Sequence record: MT133560.1
DNA: 64,000 nucleotides
Strand: one strand, 5' to 3'
The position numbers and the translations under genes are program-made. Below the pieces are notes generated by a model. It had not been told where the DNA came from. It saw only the letters and a list, made by a program, of their open reading frames with translations, and did not search any database. Position 1 is the first letter of the stretch. Each line of letters begins with the position of its first letter. This document shows positions 4,115 to 30,144 of the stretch, piece after piece.

Positions 4115-4558
4115 TTAACTACTTTCAAATTCAAGAGTTACTGGTATTGTTGGTATCCACGACAAGTTATTAAAGTATGGATGTATCGTAACCGTATTCC
4201 CAGTAATAGGTTGCGGTTGTATCTCATCTATAATAAATGGAATACCGTAAACATCTCTTAATTTTTCAGCTACTTCTAAATTATCAGTATAGTCAGTTGG
4301 TTTACCCGGTACTTTTATACCAAGACAGTACTCTGGTAAAGAGCGTCTATTAAAGTAAATAACTGTCTCACCTTTAAAATAAAGTGAACTGGTCTTCGCT
4401 CTCATTGTTGTTTTGGCATTTGTACCAGTTGCTAAGAATGTATCAGTCCCTATAAATTCAACATCATCAACAGTTAAATCCCTAGGCTTACCATTATTAT
4501 CTTTAGGTTTATTAGCCACATTCCAAGCAGCTACTAATTCAGCTCTTGTATCAGCCAT
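4115..4558 (-). CDS. Virion structural protein (gp126 position), Y-x-R paralog family
   Basis: GAGG RBS; VIYFNRRSL motif shared with the neighbour; structural cluster. Confidence 0.7.
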   Translation of the reverse strand: MADTRAELVAAWNVANKPKDNNGKPRDLTVDDVEFIGTDTFLATGTNAKTTMRAKTSSLYFKGETVIYFNRRSLPEYCLGIKVPGKPTDYTDNLEVAEKLRDVYGIPFIIDEIQPQPITGNTVTIHPYFNNLSWIPTIPVTLEFESS

Positions 4559-4566
4559 TACACACC

Positions 4567-5442
<876 letters not shown>

Positions 5443-14448: not shown

Positions 14449-14477
14449 AAGAGACACAGCCAAAAGCTGTGTCTCTT
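14449..14477 (+). terminator. Intrinsic terminator
   Basis: AAGAGACACAGC-CAAAA-GCTGTGTCTCTT followed by TTT. Confidence 0.85.
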
Positions 14478-14506: not shown

Positions 14507-15895
14507 ATGTATAATCCTATTTTACAATTACCATTTGATCCATTAGGTACAAATCCAGATTGTTTCATTGGTAGCGAACCACATACTCTAGTTCAGTATC
14601 AGGGATTCGACTATAGAATCATCAAGTTATATCATGGTGGATTCTATACAAAAGGGTTAGAAGTTTATGATGGTAAATATAATCGTTTAGTTAAAGATAT
14701 TGATTATATTGTTACTTATTATCACAAAGATGCTAGTGCGTATGTCGGTCAAGAAATATGTTCAGCAATTGTTTTCTTAAAAACACCTAGTACACCAATA
14801 GTGTATACTTCAGCTCACATGGTAGGCGGTGATCTAGCGTTTAGTTTCACAGTTATCGACGATTATATTAACTGGTGGAAAACAAATGGTAAGCCAAAGC
14901 CAAAAGATCTCGACTACACTGGTAACGAACCATATTGGAAAGACGGTGAGTTGGTTGGCGAACGATGGCATCTTGATACGTATCAGCCTTACAATAATGA
15001 GATGGAGTGGATAACACAAGCACTCATGGCTGGTGATACAAATGGTGAAGATGACTATCGTAGTAAAGTTAAAGAAATCTATGATGAATTCTTAAAGAAA
15101 TTTAATGATCGGCTAGAAAAGCATATTCAAGATAAAGCCAATCCGCACAAGATCACTCCAACCAATGTGGAACTAGGTTTAGTTAATAACTTCCCATTAG
15201 CTACTCCAGCCATTGCTCAACTAGGTCAATCCAATGCGCATTATCTAACACCACAATTAGCATATGGTGTATTAGATGAAATAGCTATAAAACCACTCAA
15301 TGCTCACATAGCACGTCGAGATAATCCACATAAAGTCAAAAATACACATGTACAGTCGTATTTGAAAAGTGATTTCGATGCACGAATTACTGGTAAGTAT
15401 TTAAAGACCGATACGGTAGCTAATACTAATATGGTTTATTATAAACCTAAAGGGCAACCTACTGCTACTTTAATGGGTTATAGCGATCTTATTTGGTGGA
15501 TGCGTAAGAACTTTGACACTGATGTGAACTTTACAGCTGGTGATGGCCAGAGTAATGTCATCAATATAAATCGGATTGGTTCCGGTACAATGGGACAATG
15601 GAAAGCACCACTCCGTGGGAATGGTATATTTACACATTTTGATCAATTAGCCACAGAGTATTCATTTCCGGTTAAGTTAAAGTTTTATGCACTAGGATTA
15701 CAACCATCCGTGCAAGCAGCATTAGATTTCTGTAGAACTAACTTTACTAATCTAGATACATGGCCTATTGGATCTACTGTATTCTTTACTATTAAAGAAC
15801 AGAAAATCCAGGCAGCTGGTAACGGATTGATTTTCGTTGATTATACTCCTAACTACGTGTGTTTCCGTTCACAAGGTGGCTGGGTAATTCCATAA
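14507..15895 (+). CDS. gp131-family tail fibre/baseplate protein (gp133 position)
   Basis: Shared N-terminal P-F-D-x-x-G...E-x-H domain and two NPH repeats. Confidence 0.8.
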   Translation: MYNPILQLPFDPLGTNPDCFIGSEPHTLVQYQGFDYRIIKLYHGGFYTKGLEVYDGKYNRLVKDIDYIVTYYHKDASAYVGQEICSAIVFLKTPSTPIVYTSAHMVGGDLAFSFTVIDDYINWWKTNGKPKPKDLDYTGNEPYWKDGELVGERWHLDTYQPYNNEMEWITQALMAGDTNGEDDYRSKVKEIYDEFLKKFNDRLEKHIQDKANPHKITPTNVELGLVNNFPLATPAIAQLGQSNAHYLTPQLAYGVLDEIAIKPLNAHIARRDNPHKVKNTHVQSYLKSDFDARITGKYLKTDTVANTNMVYYKPKGQPTATLMGYSDLIWWMRKNFDTDVNFTAGDGQSNVININRIGSGTMGQWKAPLRGNGIFTHFDQLATEYSFPVKLKFYALGLQPSVQAALDFCRTNFTNLDTWPIGSTVFFTIKEQKIQAAGNGLIFVDYTPNYVCFRSQGGWVIP

Positions 15896-15906
15896 GGATA
15901 GTTTAG

Positions 15907-17280
15907 ATGAATCCATTACTTTTACCTCTTCCATTTGATGAAACTGGAGAGAGTTATAGTAACCGAACAAAGGGTGAATACCATTCACTAGCAAAACAGA
16001 AAGGATTCCCCTATCGCATCATCGTGATGGATAAGGGTTACTTTTACACTAAAGGAATGGTTATCAGAGATGGTAGGCAGAATGAGTTAAATCCAGAAAT
16101 GGATTATCAGTGTACTGGTATTAATCCAGAAGTAATCGAGAAGACTGGACTTGAAGCGTGTTCAGTAATTGTTATTACAAAACAAGATGTCCACGAGGAT
16201 ATTTACATTGATGCTCAGATGTGCGGTGGTATATACTGTAACCTTGCCCCTTCCATATCTGAGCATGCTAACGCTCTTTTAAATAATACCCGTAAACCAC
16301 ATTGGTCTAATATTTTAGATATTCCTGACCAATTTAAACCTAATGGACATATGCATGCCTATTGGGAACTTTATGGTTTTACGCCTAGAGTTGTTAAGTT
16401 AAAAGAAATAACTGACTTATTAAAGAAAAGCTCATCAGACTCATATGACTCCATTTTAGATGAGTTTAAATATCAGTTAAGTCTAATAGAAGCTGATCTT
16501 AATACAATTGAAGCACGACTTACTACACACATCAATGATACCACCACTAACCCACACCAGACACGTAAAGGGCAAGTGGCATTAGGTAATGTTTATAATG
16601 CTGGCATTGCAACTGAAACACAAGCCAAACAGCCAAATGGCGCTATCATGAATGTCTATGCTACGCCATGGTCAATGAAGTTATCAGTTGATACCAATTA
16701 TACAGTTCAATATCTGGCACACGTTAATGATGTCACCACTAACCCACACAGGGTAACGGCTGAACAATTAAATACGTATACTGTTACTCAAGCTAATATT
16801 TTACTAAATCAAAAATTAGATAAAGGTAAAACAGCCAATACGTCTAAACTTTTATTTGGTCAAGATGTTTATAGCATGGGTGAAACAGTACGTGCTAAAA
16901 TGCCTTTAAGTGTATTGACGACTGGTCGACTAGCACCTGGTAGGATTGGTAATTCAGCTACCTGGCCAGGCCGTGATTGGACATTGATGCCTAATGGTCA
17001 ATGGACTCATTTCGGTTTTATATTTAATCGCTTCCAAAAAACAGGAACGATGGTCCACTGGAATAACACCAACTTTAAGTCTATTCAAGAAGCAATTGCT
17101 TTCCATAACACATACTTCTCAGATCCTGAACAATGGTGGCCTGGTTCGTTAGCTATTTGCCATTACGAACAAGAATTCGTTATTGGACATGGCAATGGTA
17201 CAACAGCTACTTCCTATAGGAATACTCTATTCCTACGTAAAGTTGGATCAACGTGGACTAATATAGGGGAACCGGCATAA
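15907..17280 (+). CDS. gp131-family tail fibre/baseplate protein (gp134 position)
   Basis: Same architecture as neighbours; two NPH repeats. Confidence 0.8.
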   Translation: MNPLLLPLPFDETGESYSNRTKGEYHSLAKQKGFPYRIIVMDKGYFYTKGMVIRDGRQNELNPEMDYQCTGINPEVIEKTGLEACSVIVITKQDVHEDIYIDAQMCGGIYCNLAPSISEHANALLNNTRKPHWSNILDIPDQFKPNGHMHAYWELYGFTPRVVKLKEITDLLKKSSSDSYDSILDEFKYQLSLIEADLNTIEARLTTHINDTTTNPHQTRKGQVALGNVYNAGIATETQAKQPNGAIMNVYATPWSMKLSVDTNYTVQYLAHVNDVTTNPHRVTAEQLNTYTVTQANILLNQKLDKGKTANTSKLLFGQDVYSMGETVRAKMPLSVLTTGRLAPGRIGNSATWPGRDWTLMPNGQWTHFGFIFNRFQKTGTMVHWNNTNFKSIQEAIAFHNTYFSDPEQWWPGSLAICHYEQEFVIGHGNGTTATSYRNTLFLRKVGSTWTNIGEPA

Positions 17281-18671
17281 TGATTACTTTTTTACCATTA
17301 GATCTAAAAGCTAAATTAGCATCTAATTACATTGTAGATGAGGATCACACACTTATTCAAGTCAATAATAAAACACATCGCGTACTTATGTGTACACATG
17401 GTGGTTTTTATACTAAGGACTTTAATCTACGTGATAAGAAGACTGGTTTATCTTTAAACAAAGATCAATATAAAACAACCTATCTTTATTCACAGTTATC
17501 TGAAATGACTGGCTTAGAAGTAATGGGTATTGTTGTAGTAACTGATCCTAATGTTAGTCCTAATGTCCAAGTTACATATAGAGCAGTTGGTGGTTTCTTT
17601 AGTATTTCAGCATTAGAACTTAAAGCTGTTTTTGATAAACTTGAATTAGATGAATTAAGTTTCACTTGGGATGATATTATTGGTAAACCCGATGCATATC
17701 CGCCTGCACCTCACGGCCATGAATATTGGCAGATTTATGGCACAGATACAATGGTAACTGAATTAAACCGAATAGCACATGCTTATCGGGTCGGTAGAAG
17801 TGCCATGGATAATGCTGCCGATGATTATTATAAAGTTTATCTCACTGATGCAAAAACCGCTGTGGACGATTATAGAGATCGAGTTACAGCACACTTAACT
17901 GATTATAATAATCCGCATGCTGATGATCGATTCAAGTTAATTCCACCGCTTGATAAGATATCCAACTGGGGTTTTGCTACTGAAGCTGAGTCAGTTAATA
18001 GAAACGTAAATAATAAATACATGCCAATTGGTGGTATTTATCGTATTCTTAATATTGATACGTTGGCTAAACTTGCAGCACATATTAAAAACTTTAATAA
18101 CCCACATGCTGTCACAGCTGACCAAGTTGGATCATATACCAAACCAGTGATGGATTCTAAAATAACTCCATTATTAGGTATTAATGAACAAGCTGCTAAT
18201 GCGACCACTATTGGTGCTACTACTAATAGTCAGGGTTATCCAGTTACTGGAACAGGTAAGGTATATCAGAATTTCTGGAATGATGTTCGAAAAGATATTC
18301 CAGCTGAAGAAGTAACTAGTGGCGTATTTAAATGGAATGCATTAGGTAAAGGTAATGCATCAATATTAAATGACCCTGAGAGATATTATCTAGCAAGCGA
18401 TGGTACTTGGCAAGACTGGGTTGAAGCTTTTAAAGAGTGGAACAAAGATAAGATTAAAGCCATTACCTTAGGTCAGGTAAATAGTGAAGCAGAAGCATTA
18501 AACACGTTAAATACGATGTTTACAGATAATACCAAATATCCTGAAGGCACTTACGCTGTTGTAGGTGTTAGAACTAATACCCCCTTTGAAGCCTATTATT
18601 ACCAGCAATATGTAGCAGTTAGAAATAATGGTACATGGCGTTGGATGATTCGAGCTGGAGCACTTGTATAA
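17280..18671 (+). CDS. gp131-family tail fibre/baseplate protein (gp135 position)
   Basis: TAATG coupling to the previous gene; two NPH repeats. Confidence 0.8.
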   Translation: MITFLPLDLKAKLASNYIVDEDHTLIQVNNKTHRVLMCTHGGFYTKDFNLRDKKTGLSLNKDQYKTTYLYSQLSEMTGLEVMGIVVVTDPNVSPNVQVTYRAVGGFFSISALELKAVFDKLELDELSFTWDDIIGKPDAYPPAPHGHEYWQIYGTDTMVTELNRIAHAYRVGRSAMDNAADDYYKVYLTDAKTAVDDYRDRVTAHLTDYNNPHADDRFKLIPPLDKISNWGFATEAESVNRNVNNKYMPIGGIYRILNIDTLAKLAAHIKNFNNPHAVTADQVGSYTKPVMDSKITPLLGINEQAANATTIGATTNSQGYPVTGTGKVYQNFWNDVRKDIPAEEVTSGVFKWNALGKGNASILNDPERYYLASDGTWQDWVEAFKEWNKDKIKAITLGQVNSEAEALNTLNTMFTDNTKYPEGTYAVVGVRTNTPFEAYYYQQYVAVRNNGTWRWMIRAGALV

Positions 18672-19273
18672 TGAATAATCCGTTATCACTCCAAGAACTA
18701 TCTTTAGCTACTGCGCCTACTGAAGATAAAGTAAAAGTACTATTAATGTTTAACCGTACTTCTGAGGTATTCCTACAAAGCGTAGGCTATCTACCTTTAG
18801 ATGCATTCGATGCTAAGTCACGTGAGCACACCATTTTTGTTGAAGCCGAAATGGGTACTTATGATGTAGTCGTAAGTAATACACCTGGTAAACAACCTAC
18901 ACTTTCTGATTGGAAGATTGTTCCTAAAGAAGAAGCGCCACAAGTAATTACTGAAGATCACTTAAATAGTAAAGTGGCCTACAAAATTACTGAACGCTAT
19001 CCAGTGACTGAGCAAATTAATATCCTTGCACGTGTAATTAAACAGCTAGCTGAAAAATATGGTCAAGAGTTAGATGAACTAGAAGAAATGCTTGATTATA
19101 TTGATCTTGTTAAACGAACTAATCGCGCGCATAAGGAGGCCCTAATTGAGAGCCCAGACGTTATCTATAAATCCAGGGAAGATCTCGACGCTGAGAAAGC
19201 ACATCGATATGCAGGTGGCCTGCATGAGCTTATCGGCCCACGAAAGATCGACCAAGGACGTGTTTTCAGCTGA
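18671..19273 (+). CDS. Hypothetical protein, possible tail-fibre assembly chaperone (gp136 position)
   Basis: Start moved to the ATG overlapping the gp135 stop (TAATG). ERYPVTEQINIL resembles the Y-P-x-x-x-Q-[LI] motif of proteins found after phage fibre genes. Confidence 0.55.
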   Translation: MNNPLSLQELSLATAPTEDKVKVLLMFNRTSEVFLQSVGYLPLDAFDAKSREHTIFVEAEMGTYDVVVSNTPGKQPTLSDWKIVPKEEAPQVITEDHLNSKVAYKITERYPVTEQINILARVIKQLAEKYGQELDELEEMLDYIDLVKRTNRAHKEALIESPDVIYKSREDLDAEKAHRYAGGLHELIGPRKIDQGRVFS

Positions 19274-19706
19274 ATTTGCAGCTGACCTTGTATCTTATCT
19301 GGATACACTGGGAGATTCCTGGTGGTTTAATCGGAAAAAAATTAATAGTATCCCAACTAAAGGTATCACTGAATGTGATTATTGGTTTTTAGGTCATAAC
19401 CAAATGCCAATGGAATTACGGGAATTACTATTTCATATTGCACCTAAGGTAGAAGGTGCTTGGTTAGGCGAAGTTCTAATCAACCGATATGAAATTGGTA
19501 CAGGTATGCCTGAACACATCGACCAAGCTGTTTATCGTTACAACATGGTTATTGCATTAAATGACAATGGCGATGGTATAACGATCAATGGTGAGTTTTA
19601 TCAGGATGTACCAGGTAGGGCTACTATTTTTCCAATCCGTTCAGAGCCACATGAAGTCCCTCCAGTTAAAAATAAAAGATACGTCCTTATATATCTCTAC
19701 GAGTAG
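19224..19706 (+). CDS. 2-oxoglutarate/Fe(II)-dependent dioxygenase (gp137 position)
   Basis: INRYEIGTGMPEHID (HxD), PGRATIFP, PHEVPPV (distal His) and KRY (2OG-binding Arg). Start chosen at the ATG with AGGTGG 7 nt upstream. Confidence 0.8.
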   Translation: MSLSAHERSTKDVFSAEFAADLVSYLDTLGDSWWFNRKKINSIPTKGITECDYWFLGHNQMPMELRELLFHIAPKVEGAWLGEVLINRYEIGTGMPEHIDQAVYRYNMVIALNDNGDGITINGEFYQDVPGRATIFPIRSEPHEVPPVKNKRYVLIYLYE

Positions 19707-19714
19707 GGTACAAC

Positions 19715-20203
19715 ATGGCAATTAAACTTAAGACTCTATCTAAGACAGAACTAAAAACATTAACAAAGCTTAAAGGCGAAGTTTCATTTAGAGACTCATA
19801 TGGCCACCGTATGCGAGTTGGCACTAATGGCCTTAAAGCATGTAGTGTTTATAATACTTCAAAATGGTTTAATTGGACTGCTAAACAGCGTAAAGAAATT
19901 AAACCAATTTTAGGCGAAGAACTATTTAACAAAGCACTACAAGTATGGTTTTTAGATTTCCCCAAAATAGATGGATTTCTAGATGAGATGAATTATTGGG
20001 TAGATAAACCCGAGTCCGGTACTATTCTTGCTTGGAATATTGGACCTGATGCTAAGTTCATTTTAGATGGTGAGGAACTATTAATTGGAAAAGGTGAAGG
20101 ATTAGTATTCCATCTATCCCAATTACATGAAGTAAAACGTTCCCATAATGGACAATCATGGATCTGTGTAATGGTACGTGGTGCTCCTGAAAAATTTGCT
20201 TAA
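19715..20203 (+). CDS. Degenerate 2OG-Fe(II) oxygenase/cupin-like protein (gp138 position)
   Basis: GEGLVFHLSQLHEV matches the distal part of the fold; the HxD is not retained (FLDEM). Confidence 0.5.
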   Translation: MAIKLKTLSKTELKTLTKLKGEVSFRDSYGHRMRVGTNGLKACSVYNTSKWFNWTAKQRKEIKPILGEELFNKALQVWFLDFPKIDGFLDEMNYWVDKPESGTILAWNIGPDAKFILDGEELLIGKGEGLVFHLSQLHEVKRSHNGQSWICVMVRGAPEKFA

Positions 20204-20212
20204 CAGCATAAA

Positions 20213-20232
20213 TCCCCTCCACATGGAGGGGA
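20213..20232 (+). terminator. Hairpin terminator
   Basis: TCCCCTCC-ACAT-GGAGGGGA just after the stop; no clear U tract. Confidence 0.65.
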
Positions 20233-20268
20233 ACTCTTACAAATTTACTCAATAGTACAGTGTACTAA

Positions 20269-21195
<927 letters not shown>

Positions 21196-24565: not shown

Positions 24566-26935
24566 ATGGCAAATGCTACAGACAAAGGCAAGATCAGTCA
24601 ACTGCCGGATCTAGCTACTCTTAATGATAGCGAGTATATTGAATTAATTCATACCGATGCAGCTGGTCAAGTCGATAACTATAAGTTTCTGCTGTCAAAA
24701 CTACAGACTGGGGCACCCGGTCTTAGTGCGTACGAGATTGCCGTTAAAAATGGTTTCCAGGGAACTGAAACCGAATGGCTTGATTCGCTTAAAGGTAAAT
24801 CTTCTTATCAAATCGCAGTCGATCTAGGCTTCGTTGGTACTGAAGAAGAGTTTATAGCATCCCTTAAAGGTGATGCTGGTAAGAGTGCATATGAAGTAGC
24901 TGTGGAAAATGGTTTCCAAGGTACTGAACAGGAATGGTTAACATCACTGCATGCAACCATGACTGCTGAACTACTCCAGACACTCTTAAATCAACAAGGC
25001 TATACAGTTAAAGATGTACTGCGTGTAACTGGTAAGAATGGTGGATTATCATCCAACGCTGCTTTCCATAACTTTGCTTTCCTGTTTGATAAGCGTCTAA
25101 ATCAAGACGACTTAACTGCTGGTGATAAAGTACCTCAGCGTATGATGGAACAAGGTCGTATGGAGGCAGAAGGTTATTCTTATCTAAAGAACGCCTCTGC
25201 ACCCACTACGCAAGGTGCATTACCCGAATTACCTGAGTCTGAAATTCGTATTTATGACAATGGTGAATTCCAGATTGGTAGTTTAACTGATTACATTGCA
25301 TTCAAGAATGACGGCAATATCCGTATTGTTGAAGGCGTTGATGAAACAATTGTTGATCTTAAGAACCTTCCTAAAAACGAAGGTATTAGTGGCGGTGTAT
25401 TCGTCAAAGATGTACAAGCAACTGATCCCAGTCAGAACGTAGGTAGTATTGTGCGTACCCCTGATGGACACAGCGTACAGTCATGCCTATCGACTACTAG
25501 TAATGTTCGGGTTATCGTTGATGCAATAACTGGACATTCTAGTTATGTACCTAGTGTTAAAATCAATAACGTAGATGCAGTTGTAACTCCTGGCGTTAAT
25601 CCACCTATGTGGATTGCTACCGCCGATATTGATCTTGGTGCACCTACTACTGAAGGTTATGCTGATATTGTTGTAGAACACGCCGATGGGGCTAAATTCA
25701 CTACTAAGGTATTAGCCGATACTCCCGCTAATATTACCAGTGCTGTATTTACTGGCGGTTATCCGTTAGGTCAAACAGAACTTAAAGAAGATGACCTTGT
25801 TGCAATTAAAGTTGTTACTGATGAAAATATAGTAGCATACGAAATTGCTGACTTTGGTGCACTGAAAGAAAGTAGTGGCACTGTTGCACCTACTAAAGAA
25901 CTAGAGGTTACTGGTCTTTACGTAGCTGATCGTGGTAATACTACTAAGGCATATGGTTTCCGTGTACGTGTTCAGAAATCAACTGGTTCATGGTCAGAAT
26001 GGTTTACTTCCAGTGATGCTGGTTCCGAAGATAAAATTAACACCATGCAGTTAAACGATCTTCGCCCAGTTGTTAATATTGGTCAAGTAACTTATCCGTC
26101 TGGTCAAAGTGCTATTAAAATAGGTGAAACTGCTACTGTTGCCAATACAGTATCTAATGCTGATAGTGTGGTTTATTCCTCACCAAATGATCAGCTCACT
26201 ATAACCAGTGCAAATGAAGCAGAAATTGCTAAGGTAGTTACTTATAAGTCAGGTACTTATAACGACAGCACTAATAACCTATTAATTACTGCTAAACGTG
26301 CAGCTAACGGTAGTATAGCTACTGCTACTACTGTTGTAGCTATTGCAAATGCGGCTCCTACTGCAACGGTTACCTATCCAGCAGCTCGCCTTCGCTCAGG
26401 TGGTAACTTTGGAACCCAAGTACAAAGTCATGTCATTACTTTAACCTCTACTCAGAAACTAAGTGCAGCTCCGGCCATGAATGCGCCTGGCGGTAAGTGG
26501 GCTACTGAGGATTGGAAATCTGATGCCACTGGTAAGGTATGGACACGTGCATTACTAGTACATGACGATGATCCTAAAGGAACCTACGATTTTAACAGTG
26601 TGGTTCTAAAAGGTTTAGCTGGTGTTGAAGCTAATAGTGTAAATGGTGGTACTTATGTACTAGGTGGATTTGTATTCCGCACTCTAAGTGTGGCTGCTTG
26701 GCCGAACCGTGAAACTGATATTGGTACTGAAGTAACCAATACTGGTAAACTACGTTGCAGTAACCTATCTAAAGGTTCTACTGGTAGCTTAAACTTCACT
26801 TATAAGGCGGATGATGCAAATCAAGTTGACACCTACACCATCAAGGATGGCAATAAGTGGTATAACTGTGACTCAGCAAACGCTGTGTCCAACACCACTG
26901 GACTGATGAAAATCGAACTTGAGGAAGTAGTATAA
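24566..26935 (+). CDS. Fibre-like structural protein (gp145 position) with three SAY-x-x-A-x-x-x-GF-x-G-x-x-x-EW repeats
   Basis: KISQLP N-terminus, three collagen-associated repeats, T/V/A-rich beta-sandwich-like C-terminal half. Confidence 0.75.
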   Translation: MANATDKGKISQLPDLATLNDSEYIELIHTDAAGQVDNYKFLLSKLQTGAPGLSAYEIAVKNGFQGTETEWLDSLKGKSSYQIAVDLGFVGTEEEFIASLKGDAGKSAYEVAVENGFQGTEQEWLTSLHATMTAELLQTLLNQQGYTVKDVLRVTGKNGGLSSNAAFHNFAFLFDKRLNQDDLTAGDKVPQRMMEQGRMEAEGYSYLKNASAPTTQGALPELPESEIRIYDNGEFQIGSLTDYIAFKNDGNIRIVEGVDETIVDLKNLPKNEGISGGVFVKDVQATDPSQNVGSIVRTPDGHSVQSCLSTTSNVRVIVDAITGHSSYVPSVKINNVDAVVTPGVNPPMWIATADIDLGAPTTEGYADIVVEHADGAKFTTKVLADTPANITSAVFTGGYPLGQTELKEDDLVAIKVVTDENIVAYEIADFGALKESSGTVAPTKELEVTGLYVADRGNTTKAYGFRVRVQKSTGSWSEWFTSSDAGSEDKINTMQLNDLRPVVNIGQVTYPSGQSAIKIGETATVANTVSNADSVVYSSPNDQLTITSANEAEIAKVVTYKSGTYNDSTNNLLITAKRAANGSIATATTVVAIANAAPTATVTYPAARLRSGGNFGTQVQSHVITLTSTQKLSAAPAMNAPGGKWATEDWKSDATGKVWTRALLVHDDDPKGTYDFNSVVLKGLAGVEANSVNGGTYVLGGFVFRTLSVAAWPNRETDIGTEVTNTGKLRCSNLSKGSTGSLNFTYKADDANQVDTYTIKDGNKWYNCDSANAVSNTTGLMKIELEEVV

Positions 26936-29900
26936 TGGCTTCTGCATTTGAAGATTATGTAAACGGGGAACTCCCCAAACGGGTATCATCAATTGATGAG
27001 CCCACTTCTGTAGTTAATGGACACATCCCGGTTTCTACCGGGGTGGGTCTTAATACTACTTTCGTTGATCCTGTTACTATACCTGGATTAAAGGGTGAAG
27101 ATGGTCAGCCGGGTAAAGATGGCGAACAAGGCCCTCCTGGCCCAGTTGGTCCGGCTATTAACATTATCGCTAATGTTGATCTAGCAACATTCGAACAAGA
27201 TATTAAACCATTAGATACGCATAATGTCGGTGATGCTTGGTTCGTTGAAGATCGGCTATGGGTGTGGGAATCACCGCTAGGTAATGAAGACCCCCCTGTA
27301 AAAGGTCGTTGGGTTGAAACAGGTTCACTTCGTGGTCCAGATGGTACTGGTCTAGTTATCCGTGGTCGTTGGCCTAATAACTTAGAATTACCTAAGACTG
27401 AAAGTAATAAACCTGGAGATGCTTATTCATGGAATAATCAACTCTGGGCGTGGATGCTTATCTCAGGTAATAATCCGCCAGAGAATCCAACTATTGATGA
27501 CTATGATTGGTTCCCAGTTACACCACAGGGTGAACCAGCAATGCCGTTTACCATTAAGGATTCACTACCATCACCAGCTGATTTACCTGATCCATCTGTA
27601 GCTAAAGAATCAGAAGCATACTTAGTTACTATGGAAGCTGGTAAACCAGAACATCTATTCATCTTTGTAAAAGGGGCATGGTCAGACCTAGGTACTTTCC
27701 AAGGCCCTGAGGGCCCACAAGGTAAACCAGGTAATACAGGTGATCCGGGTCCCGATGGTAAACAAGGTGAACCTGGTCCACAAGGTCGTAACTTAGAAGT
27801 AGTTAAAGCAGTTGAAACTGCTGATGATCTATTAACCACCACTGGTGTAGAACAATACCAAGGTGTTTCAGTACGTTCCACCAATACGGTTTATGTACTG
27901 ACTGGCCAAGATCCGACTGTTGATATCTCATGGACAGCCATGGGTTCATTCCGTGGCCCGCAGGGCCCTGAAGGTCCGCAAGGTGAAGATGGCGAACAAG
28001 GTCTACCTGGTGAACCAGGGGCACAAGGTAAATCGGCTTTCCAAGTAGCATTGGACAATGGCTTCACTGGTACTGAGGGTGAATGGTTAATCAGTCTACA
28101 TGGTAAGAACGTAGTTATTACTGGTGCTGTTGCCAATGAGGCAGCCCTGCCGGCAGATGCTCCTGATCAGGCAGCGTACTTCACACAAGACACATCTACC
28201 TTATTTGTTAAGATAGATGGTAATTGGGTAAATAGTGGTACACATCGAGGTCCTAAAGGTGAAGATGGCGCACCTGGTAAAGACGGTGATCAGGGACCAG
28301 AAGGACCCGAGGGACCAGAAGGCCCACAAGGTCCCGCTGGTGAACCTATCCAGATCATCGCAGCGATTGACACTCCTGAAGATACCCCACCAGAAGCACT
28401 TGCCGATAACCAATGGAAAGCATATACTGTTAAGTCCACGGGCGAAGTATTTGTTAACATGGACGGTAGTCGCTGGACTAGCATTGGTATTATGGCAGGT
28501 CCGCAAGGTAAACCGGGTGAAGGTTTAAACATTAAAGGTGTTTTAACCGATGCTTCACAACTACCAAAGAAAGACACTGATCCTGACTTAGTAACTGGTG
28601 ATTCATACTGGGTTGAAACTAACGAAGGTACAATGCTCTATACTTACCAAGGTCAGGAAATTGATGGCTATATCGGCCCAATTAATCTAAATGGTGAGCA
28701 GGGTATCCAGGGTGTCGAAGGCCCACAAGGTCCTGAAGGTAAACAAGGTGGTGGTCTATTAATTATCTATGTTGGTGATGATGCTGGTAAACCAGTAGCA
28801 TCTGCTGATAACGTAGGTAAAGGTATTGCCATTCGCACCAATACTGAAGGACAAGTAGAAGTATTTGTAAGTATCGATACTGAAGGTACATTTACTTGGG
28901 AAAGCCTAGGTGTCTTAGCCATGGGTCCGCAGGGTCCTGAAGGTCCTGAGGGCAAACAAGGTGTTCCAGGTATCCCTGGTAAAACCGGTCAGAAAGGTGA
29001 ACGTGGATCCTCTTGGGTAATTCTACCTGAAGGTCAAACTGCACCCACTTCTATCGATGGTAATCGTGGTGACTGGTGTATCGACAAAACTGGTACCGTT
29101 TGGTATAAAGATGCTAACTGGGTTGTATTCTACAAATTAATGTCAGTTCCAGTTAGTGAAGTCGATCCAGAAGATGTCGATAAGAAAATGGTTCGGTACA
29201 AACTCGGTTGGACTGAACTACCTGTTGATGAGGTGGTAGATGCTGAAGTAGGTGTCTTCTATGGTCGCCGTAAAGCAACCGCTGACGGGGCTGTTGAATG
29301 GACTGCTATTGAATTACCAACACCTGCCATTGATGCTGTACCTAGTCCAGTTGTTAATGCACAATACGTTCGTAAAGGTATTGCAGGGGGTGAAACTGAA
29401 TGGGCTACCATTACATTCCCAGAAATTCCTTCAGATGTAGTACGCGATACTGCACAAGCTACTAAGCCTCAAGGTCGTGTAGCTGGTAACTGGGTTGATG
29501 TAGCACCTCTGCAAACCGATGATACTCTAATGGGTATGCAAAATGGTGAATGGGTAGCTGTACCAGCCGCAGTTATTGGCGAAGTACCTAGTGAAGGCGC
29601 TAATGGCACTAACTATGTACGTGAGAAAACAGCTAGTGGTTCTAAATGGACACCTGTAACTATTATAGTTGATCAAGCTGATGCTACTAGTGGACAACTA
29701 TTCCTACGTAACGCTGCGGCTAAATCATGGACTCTATTCCAAGGTCCGAATAATGATGTAACCGCTGATGGTGATTGGGTACGTAGCCGTACTGGTACTA
29801 ATATTACTTGGAAGAAGCTAGATAAATCATTCGATGTATATAGTCTGAAATCAAGTACATTCACTGGTACAGCTTTAACTCTAACACCTGCTAACCAGCA

Positions 29901-30144
29901 GTGCTATAGGGTTCAAACTACTGCTAACCAAACCATTACACTAGAGAATGGACCTGTTGATCGCATGATCACAGCTGTTCTTGTATTGCTTGGTAAGGTA
30001 GCTATGCCAACACTGTCTAGTGCAGTGCTACAGTGGAACAATGGTACTCCAGTAATAGTAGATGACCTAGGTGATACTAAAACAGTTCTCACCCTCTTAT
30101 GGGATGGTACTAACTGGATAGTTTCCAAAGGTGCTGTTATTTAA
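26935..30144 (+). CDS. Collagen-like fibre protein (gp146 position)
   Basis: Multiple (G-X-Y)n blocks separated by Trp-containing globular modules; TAATG coupling with the previous gene. Confidence 0.85.
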   Translation: MASAFEDYVNGELPKRVSSIDEPTSVVNGHIPVSTGVGLNTTFVDPVTIPGLKGEDGQPGKDGEQGPPGPVGPAINIIANVDLATFEQDIKPLDTHNVGDAWFVEDRLWVWESPLGNEDPPVKGRWVETGSLRGPDGTGLVIRGRWPNNLELPKTESNKPGDAYSWNNQLWAWMLISGNNPPENPTIDDYDWFPVTPQGEPAMPFTIKDSLPSPADLPDPSVAKESEAYLVTMEAGKPEHLFIFVKGAWSDLGTFQGPEGPQGKPGNTGDPGPDGKQGEPGPQGRNLEVVKAVETADDLLTTTGVEQYQGVSVRSTNTVYVLTGQDPTVDISWTAMGSFRGPQGPEGPQGEDGEQGLPGEPGAQGKSAFQVALDNGFTGTEGEWLISLHGKNVVITGAVANEAALPADAPDQAAYFTQDTSTLFVKIDGNWVNSGTHRGPKGEDGAPGKDGDQGPEGPEGPEGPQGPAGEPIQIIAAIDTPEDTPPEALADNQWKAYTVKSTGEVFVNMDGSRWTSIGIMAGPQGKPGEGLNIKGVLTDASQLPKKDTDPDLVTGDSYWVETNEGTMLYTYQGQEIDGYIGPINLNGEQGIQGVEGPQGPEGKQGGGLLIIYVGDDAGKPVASADNVGKGIAIRTNTEGQVEVFVSIDTEGTFTWESLGVLAMGPQGPEGPEGKQGVPGIPGKTGQKGERGSSWVILPEGQTAPTSIDGNRGDWCIDKTGTVWYKDANWVVFYKLMSVPVSEVDPEDVDKKMVRYKLGWTELPVDEVVDAEVGVFYGRRKATADGAVEWTAIELPTPAIDAVPSPVVNAQYVRKGIAGGETEWATITFPEIPSDVVRDTAQATKPQGRVAGNWVDVAPLQTDDTLMGMQNGEWVAVPAAVIGEVPSEGANGTNYVREKTASGSKWTPVTIIVDQADATSGQLFLRNAAAKSWTLFQGPNNDVTADGDWVRSRTGTNITWKKLDKSFDVYSLKSSTFTGTALTLTPANQQCYRVQTTANQTITLENGPVDRMITAVLVLLGKVAMPTLSSAVLQWNNGTPVIVDDLGDTKTVLTLLWDGTNWIVSKGAVI
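27085..29008 (+). repeat. Interrupted collagen G-X-Y coding repeats
   Basis: Examples: GPEGPQGKPGNTGDPGPDGKQGEPGPQG and GPKGEDGAPGKDGDQGPEGPEGPEGPQGPAGEP. Boundaries approximate. Confidence 0.9.

Follow-up and report, generated by a model that had tools for sequence, protein, structure and literature searches.

A three-gene module with a predicted 2-oxoglutarate oxygenase travels with tail-fibre genes in unrelated phages

We describe three adjacent genes, gp136, gp137 and ORF138, in a 64,000-nucleotide stretch of sequence record MT133560.1 (the window, numbered from its first letter). All three open reading frames (ORFs) lie on the plus strand, directly 3′ of the paralogous tail genes gp131-gp135, and correspond to PHIKZ136, PHIKZ137 and PHIKZ138 of phage phiKZ. 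Bases 18600-20300 share 100% identity with Pseudomonas phage fnug and 99.5% with phiKZ. We propose, with a probability of roughly 45%, that the trio is a conserved accessory module, not itself part of the virion, which serves those tail fibres that bear a particular tip domain at the C-terminus (in phiKZ gp133, gp134 and gp135), and that gp137 oxidises a side chain of the fibre protein. A preliminary description of the window had suggested that this phage hydroxylates its own collagen fibres or other tail proteins. Because fibre genes accompany the trio throughout, in phages not related to one another, we regard it as most likely a module for fibre maturation rather than a collagen hydroxylase.

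The middle gene, gp137 (19224..19706, plus strand), encodes a protein of 160 amino acids (aa) that is predicted to be an Fe(II)/2-oxoglutarate (2OG) oxygenase with a double-stranded beta-helix. The preliminary description had read a full HxD...H...R set in the layout of prolyl 4-hydroxylase-like enzymes in this gene, and all of the motifs that it quoted are present: Y89-x-x-G92-x5-H98-x-D100, G131-x-A-x-x-F and H143-E-V-x-P-V-x-x-x-R152. The predicted metal triad consists of H98 (codon 19515-19517), D100 (19521-19523) and H143 (19650-19652), while R152 (19677-19679) would bind 2OG. In our alignment these four residues are kept in 47/47 non-identical relatives. The protein matches the Pfam family 2OG-FeII_Oxy_3 (PF13640) with an expectation value (E) of 2.1e-5 and 25.8 bits, slightly below the cut-off of 27 bits, and 23 of 28 orthologues match the same family at E≤0.1, the best at 7.4e-6. 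A search of NCBIfam with gp137 gave no match, and a search of PDB sequences with gp137 alone gave chance kinase matches only. A gp137 profile had a single weak, local match among PDB sequences, to ALKBH8 (E 0.0066, 34 residues around the HxD motif), which we took as a superfamily motif and not as family membership.

An AlphaFold2 model built from 28 orthologues reached a mean predicted local distance difference test score (pLDDT) of 91.8 and a predicted template modelling score (pTM) of 0.87, and its oxygenase fold spans all 160 aa. Foldseek matched this model to 179 PDB chains at E≤0.001, with a probability of 1.00 against many solved oxygenases; all 50 of the matches listed are 2OG oxygenases. 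The best solved neighbours are PiuC/YbiX-type proteins, the lysyl hydroxylases of human (LH3) and mimivirus, the prolyl hydroxylases of PBCV-1 and Pseudomonas, PHD2 and AspH (E 1e-6 to 1e-4), with ALKBH6 lower in the ranking. The modelled fold is thus certain to be that of a 2OG oxygenase, and the earlier class of a prolyl-4-hydroxylase-like enzyme is supported in the form of a prolyl/lysyl-hydroxylase-like Fe(II)/2OG oxygenase, on the Pfam match, the confident fold model and the catalytic residues. Databases already list gp137 as a 2OG oxygenase, through a precomputed PF13640 match, the UniProt name of the Psa21 orthologue and one GenBank record. The RefSeq name of gp137, "DNA endonuclease", is a label spread from PHROG 2297, for which our analysis found no support.

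Proteins of the gp137 family are few and come from viruses. When 1.84 billion representative proteins were scanned in full with HMMER, only 96 matched at E≤1e-3, nearly all of 150-190 aa; traceable cluster members were located on large contigs, phage-like or marine. Homologues of gp137 were present in 72 records of isolated phages, 72/72 of them phages of Pseudomonas. Scanning bacterial genomes with narrow patterns of the jumbo-phage type revealed no gp137 copy, a weak negative. Small 2OG oxygenases of cyanophages and uncultured phages in BFVD (among them S-RIM50 A0A127KLH9, S-T4 and S-CAM8; ~150-180 aa) resemble gp137 in fold (E 2e-7 to 1e-6, template modelling (TM) score ≤0.71); they share 14-19% identity with gp137 and fall outside its family. 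A weak match to the family (E 1.2e-5) was also observed in the C-terminal half of a 362-aa protein of Synechococcus phage ACG-2014f (P0140, annotated "ferrochelatase"), a two-domain protein which may carry a fused oxygenase domain.

The third gene, ORF138 (19715..20203, plus strand, 162 aa), is on profile and model evidence a degenerate paralogue of gp137 with the same fold, a relationship that was not recognised in the preliminary description. Aligned with hhalign, the gp137 and ORF138 families gave a probability of 57.9% with small alignments and 90.5% (E 1.3e-6, 136 columns) with all loci, against 0.1-0.2% for control comparisons with gp136. Independently, the gp137 model was matched with a TM score of 0.68 (E 4.9e-6) by the BFVD model of an ORF138 orthologue, gp157 of PhiPA3. 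The fold assignment rests on these two comparisons, our own single-sequence model of ORF138 having a pLDDT of only 39.6. The pairwise comparison of gp137 with ORF138 was not significant, and a word-based protein search with ORF138 returned its own cluster only and no distant homologues; the homologues used here were taken from neighbouring ORFs of the fetched loci. Weak matches to Cupin_2 were also seen. By residue mapping, ORF138 retains the aspartate (D90) and the distal histidine (H138), each in 41/44 sequences, with leucine or phenylalanine at the position of the proximal histidine and no conserved basic residue at that of the arginine. Lacking the proximal histidine and the arginine, two of the four catalytic residues, ORF138 is probably not an oxygenase.

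BLAST searches located homologues of gp136, gp137 and ORF138, in the same order, in phages 201phi2-1 (gp221-223) and QdP_Psa3 (115 kb) and in the T4-like phage Milchi. We then examined a set of 55 loci (51 from IMG/VR and four phage records) with one hidden Markov model (HMM) per module family. Each model matched one ORF, and the three genes were adjacent and co-oriented in 55/55 loci. Three more distant loci, whose members were found by exact protein look-up, also hold the trio, which brings adjacency to 58/58. Gene order in the 55-locus set is 136-137-138 except in four loci with 136-138-137. The module occurs in nucleus-forming jumbo phages (phiKZ, 201phi2-1 and PhiPA3), in QdP_Psa3, in T4-like phages (Milchi and the phage of locus L061) and on environmental contigs, and tail-fibre genes flank it in every lineage according to record annotations and PHROG matches. 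The association of gp137 with tail-fibre genes is much stronger than could be noted in the window, as the trio stands beside such genes in 58/58 loci and the phage lineages concerned are unrelated. Overlap between the reading frames of gp136 and gp137 amounts to 50 nucleotides (nt) in both phiKZ and 201phi2-1; in QdP_Psa3 it is 35 nt, and in the T4-like phages 4 nt.

A two-gene variant was observed in five loci (L108, positions 4422-5421; L113, 4428-5429; L122; L109; L110), where it sits between two fibre genes of ~600 aa. The oxygenase gene comes first and keeps the H-x-D motif and the distal histidine, with lysine at the arginine column; a gp136-like gene follows, without an ORF138-like gene.

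The fibres encoded upstream of the module are dissimilar overall, and their last ~110 residues are homologous between lineages. An HMM built from environmental fibres picked up the proteins of QdP_Psa3 (3.6e-7) and Milchi (6.6e-5). One built only from the C-termini of gp135-type proteins of jumbo phages found gp135 (1e-41), gp133 (1.6e-13), gp134 (2e-12) and the QdP_Psa3 fibre (3e-14), and did not match phiKZ gp131. Compared by hhalign, the C-termini of the non-jumbo fibres aligned to residues 346-460 of the gp135 family (probability 83.7%, E 8e-6). In the window, this tip domain occupies approximately residues 331-457 (18270-18650) of gp135 (17280..18671, plus strand), the tail-fibre subunit directly 5′ of the module. 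The tail-fibre subunits gp133 (14507..15895) and gp134 (15907..17280), both on the plus strand, carry it at approximately residues 341-461 (15527-15889) and 327-453 (16885-17265), respectively, as placed by the tip HMM; the phiKZ cryo-electron microscopy (cryo-EM) atlas assigns both proteins to the fibre (PMC13250141).

The tip domain was present upstream of the module in 49 of the 54 loci with upstream sequence. Working in reverse from the fibre C-terminus in 80 loci, we found the tip core in 16, with the trio downstream in 16/16, while 58 loci sharing only a generic fibre-shaft motif had neither tip core nor trio. The reach of this reverse test is limited: no stretch of the tip is conserved enough for a pattern search, and a single-protein query mostly drew the shaft-motif loci that make up the negative set. 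A tblastn search with the gp135 tip matched only phages that also carry the module. Two glycines are nearly invariant in the tip-domain alignment, and the proline of a P-x-G-T/S motif is common, not universal. In T4-like Pseudomonas phages (Milchi, locus L004, 7844-9938; locus L061, 4889-6968), a 176-181-aa tip-domain protein and the trio lie between gp11 and gp13, a slot that in T4 holds the short tail fibre and fibritin genes. The four loci with permuted gene order (L049-L052; for example L050, 5758-7343) have an upstream fibre of ~800 aa without a detectable tip domain.

The first gene of the module, gp136 (18671..19273, plus strand), encodes a 200-aa putative helper protein whose fold family is unassigned (PHROG 13209, function unknown); a small domain at its N-terminus precedes a helical part at the C-terminus. 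Homologues of gp136 adjoin the oxygenase gene in 58/58 loci and in the two-gene variant. A gp136 profile had no relative in Pfam or the PDB, and neither gp136 nor ORF138 matched a known chaperone family in Pfam, the functional categories of PHROG, NCBIfam or the PDB. The earlier suggestion of a possible fibre chaperone beside the oxygenase survives in part: a role for gp136 as a fibre helper is plausible, as it always precedes or pairs with the enzyme gene and published virion data do not list it, but it cannot be placed in any known chaperone family.

The genes from gp133 to ORF138 are closely packed on a single strand. A strong terminator-like hairpin (14449..14477, plus strand), made up of a 12-bp stem and a T-rich tail 3′ of it, separates gp132 from gp133 and is the likely upstream border of this unit. 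A G+C-rich hairpin with a palindromic stem follows directly after ORF138 (20213..20232; listed on the minus strand, where the T-run is) and is a possible end of it. As these hairpins flank gp133 to ORF138, the genes between them likely form one transcription unit. For phiKZ, a transcription start site has been reported upstream of orf139 (bioRxiv 10.1101/2025.11.23.690004). Judged from gene packing, hairpins and this start site, the earlier proposal that the oxygenase and its partner end the gp133-135 fibre operon appears plausible.

Published data from phiKZ and a relative bear on where the products act. The 2026 cryo-EM atlas of phiKZ describes a fibre base of three copies of gp131 with gp133, gp134 and gp135, places the N-terminus of gp133 in the fibre, leaves the distal parts unresolved, and does not mention gp136 or gp137 (PMC13250141). 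In the record of 201phi2-1, gp216-220 and gp224 are annotated as "identified by mass spectrometry", a note that gp221-223 do not carry. In phiKZ transposon insertion sequencing (TnSeq), zero insertions were recorded in orf135, 136, 138, 139 and 140, while 577 reads from 2 sites fell in orf137; gp131-135 are counted by the authors among tail genes that lack insertions (bioRxiv 10.1101/2025.11.23.690004, Table S2). Growth on the laboratory host thus seems possible without gp137 but not without its two partners, a contrast based on two insertion sites and open to polarity effects. With insertions tolerated in orf137, catalysis seems dispensable on that host, and the essential role of the module may be non-enzymatic.

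Under the proposed fibre-maturation reading, the trio would be produced together with gp133-135 and would bind new fibre subunits in the cytoplasm late in infection. gp136 could act as a partly helical adaptor or chaperone, coupled translationally to gp137 through the overlapping frames. ORF138 would be a non-catalytic partner that binds the substrate or the enzyme. gp137, predicted to be a catalytically competent oxygenase of the prolyl/lysyl-hydroxylase-like branch, would hydroxylate a side chain of the fibre protein while the fibre folds or trimerises. What the data show is the enzyme fold with its catalytic residues, the paralogy of ORF138, the unbroken linkage of the three genes, their fibre neighbourhood and the common tip domain; the fibre as substrate, the residue and the chemistry, and a complex of the three proteins are what we infer. 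A bolder version, which we regard as doubtful, is that enzyme, pseudo-enzyme and adaptor together place an O2-dependent hydroxyl mark on receptor-binding tips and move between unrelated phages with the tip domain.

Several observations weigh against the proposal that gp137 modifies the fibre. The tip-domain alignment holds no invariant hydroxylatable residue, and no modified residue is known from direct evidence. The tip domain was undetected upstream of the module in 5 of the 54 loci with upstream sequence (L049-L052 and L059), and the two-gene variant retains the oxygenase and the gp136-like gene and loses the ORF138-like gene. In the TnSeq data, orf137 tolerates insertions, with none in orf136 or orf138. 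The fold matches, finally, resemble prolyl, lysyl, aspartyl and small-molecule hydroxylases alike and cannot tell them apart, so that the substrate class is not certain from the model.

Tail fibres set the range of hosts to which a phage can attach, and their known helpers are non-enzymatic chaperones. An oxygenase module that travels with a tip domain among jumbo, T4-like and other phages suggests an undescribed chemical maturation of receptor-binding proteins. If the bolder version is true, the module would be an enzymatic post-translational maturation system for these proteins, and its need for O2, Fe(II) and 2OG means that fibre properties could be tied to the physiological state of the host. 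A role in fibre maturation would also give a definite function to three phiKZ genes whose current labels are "hypothetical" or, in error, "DNA endonuclease"; two of the three look fitness-conferring in TnSeq, and the latter label illustrates how a mislabel spreads from PHROG to RefSeq. The analysis also corrects the appealing but unsupported notion of collagen hydroxylation by phages. A literature search yielded no specific report on phiKZ gp136 or gp137, or on a connection between phage 2OG oxygenases and tail fibres, and in the literature covered we met no description of the three-gene module, of the pseudo-enzyme paralogue or of a link to a fibre tip domain that moves between phages.

Tail-fibre assembly genes that follow a fibre gene include gp38 and gp57A of T4 and the Tfa genes of Mu, P2 and lambda. 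The module shares with them its place right 3′ of a fibre gene, its co-inheritance with the tip and, as far as record notes and the phiKZ atlas indicate, the absence of its products from virions. This resemblance, together with the lack of insertions in orf136 and orf138 beside a tolerant orf137, raises the possibility that the trio consists mainly of folding or assembly chaperones for the fibre tip, with the oxygenase chemistry secondary, conditional (required, say, on certain hosts or in certain conditions only) or aimed at a partner protein. We consider this unlikely. The metal triad persists together with the 2OG-binding residue in 47/47 relatives, and the two-gene variant, with lysine for arginine, retains the triad as well, which argues for selection on catalysis. 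In contrast to the classical assembly genes, the module includes an enzyme with invariant residues and a pseudo-enzyme paralogue, and neither sequence nor family comparisons relate it to a known family of tail-fibre assembly proteins.

It is also conceivable, if distinctly unlikely, that gp137 acts on a non-protein substrate related to adsorption, perhaps a small molecule or part of the host envelope, and that its link to fibres reflects a shared role at the host surface. The top fold matches include PiuC/YbiX-type proteins and small-molecule hydroxylases (3dkq, 9qn4, PolD 9blq and HalB/HalD), the Pfam search returned a weak match of gp137 to the Asp/Asn hydroxylase family, and the exclusive origin of the 72 isolated-phage records from Pseudomonas phages hints at a host-specific target. 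The best structural matches, the PiuC/YbiX-type PKHD hydroxylases (3dkq, 9qn4 and 9ghl) and Burkholderia 6n1f (E 1.2e-6 to 3e-5, TM score ≤0.67), differ from gp137 in being cellular proteins of ~210-230 aa with an unrelated genomic context and 18-19% identity. Against this reading, the linkage of the module is to one fibre tip domain, not to hosts or to fibres generally. Virion data do not report gp137, which would leave it unable to act at adsorption, and no transport or membrane signals were noticed in its 160 aa.

The suggestion that prompted this analysis, that gp137 is a collagen prolyl (or lysyl) hydroxylase stabilising the collagen-like segments of gp146 7 kb downstream, now appears very improbable, and collagen hydroxylation as a conserved function is largely refuted; at most, gp137 might have a side activity on gp146 in phiKZ itself. 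The collagen-like runs themselves were confirmed: a scan for G-X-Y runs found six, with 54 triplets in total, in the gp146-type collagen-like fibre ORF (26935-30144), with 21 prolines at X and 11 at Y positions. Collagen-like fibre and module are usually both present in nucleus-forming Pseudomonas jumbo phages. The fold neighbours of gp137 also include collagen or prolyl hydroxylases of viruses and bacteria, and lysyl hydroxylases (5c5t, 4j25, 6ax7 and 6tex). However, the co-occurrence of oxygenase and collagen genes, set in advance as a test, broke down in both directions. The complete genome of QdP_Psa3 (114,794 bp, six frames) carries the module and no coding G-X-Y run of ≥5 triplets, and 32 loci of the 55-locus set, those without a gp135- or gp139-type neighbourhood, have no run of ≥6 triplets within 10 kb. 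Conversely, gp146-like collagen fibres are common in phages without a gp137 homologue, as in PVP-SE1-like phages, EL and PhiEaH1, and the module always adjoins a different type of fibre. In the remaining jumbo phages with the module, each gp146 orthologue has only 0-2 prolines at Y positions (1 in 47 triplets in 201phi2-1, 1 in 70 in Psa21 and 0 in 46 in Noxifer), though the catalytic residues of the enzyme are invariant.

Comparison with the enzymes themselves points the same way. Prolyl 4-hydroxylases (vCPH of PBCV-1, 5c5t; PPHD of Pseudomonas putida, 4j25/4iw3; PHD2) share with gp137 the beta-helix fold, the HxD...H metal triad, similarity to 2OG-FeII_Oxy_3 (in gp137 just below the cut-off) and a basic residue ~9 positions past the distal histidine (Foldseek E 7e-6 to 4e-5, TM score 0.54-0.61). 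They differ in sequence (13-19% identity) and have extra substrate-binding elements that the 160-aa gp137 lacks. gp137 has a degenerate paralogue and a helper gene, and no conserved proline-rich or collagen substrate, including X-Pro-Gly sequences, co-occurs with it. Its closest similarity is not specific to the collagen enzymes, as vCPH ranks fourth with a TM score of 0.55 and is not separable from lysyl, aspartyl, PKHD-type and small-molecule hydroxylases. Collagen lysyl hydroxylases (human LH3, 6tex/6fxr; mimivirus L230, 6ax7/9nev) have a catalytic domain like gp137 (E 6e-6 to 6e-5, TM score ≤0.69), and L230 offers a precedent for a virus that modifies its own fibre-like proteins; gp137 has no glycosyltransferase domain and shows no dependence on collagen-like genes.

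A nucleic-acid enzyme, be it a demethylase of DNA or RNA like AlkB or the "DNA endonuclease" that RefSeq and PHROG 2297 name, is hardly credible: besides that label, the sole weak profile match to ALKBH8, the ALKBH6 fold match, weak matches of 12/28 orthologues to PF13532 and a superfamily fold in common with AlkB proteins (ALKBH8, 3thp; ALKBH6, 7vjs), with local similarity at the N-x-Y-x-x-G...H-x-D strand, stand a gp137 match to PF13532 of E 0.1 and 13 bits against a 31-bit cut-off, no nuclease fold, no nuclease family in Pfam or NCBIfam, best family and fold matches to protein hydroxylases, no room in 160 aa for a nucleotide-recognition lid, a virion-morphogenesis context, the gene belonging to a tail-fibre module in all lineages and never to a block of replication or repair genes, and R152 as the only conserved arginine after the distal histidine, the column six residues further on being leucine in 47/47 relatives, so that the paired-arginine motif of AlkB is missing.

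Some minor observations concern the collagen-like and neighbouring genes. The only G-X-Y run of QdP_Psa3, of 12 triplets, is the antisense reading of a long linker rich in proline, threonine, aspartate and glutamate in CDS0110 (L057, 19321-20499), and such linkers are a trap for collagen-repeat scans of raw DNA. The RefSeq name "tail sheath" for gp145 (24566-26935), of which the translation only was read, looks like another propagated PHROG label. The collagen-like fibre is 1069 aa long in the window and 1093 aa in phiKZ (L001, 20336-23617), at ~97% identity; a gap of 24 residues in a partly G-X-Y protein suggests expansion or contraction of the repeats between close strains.

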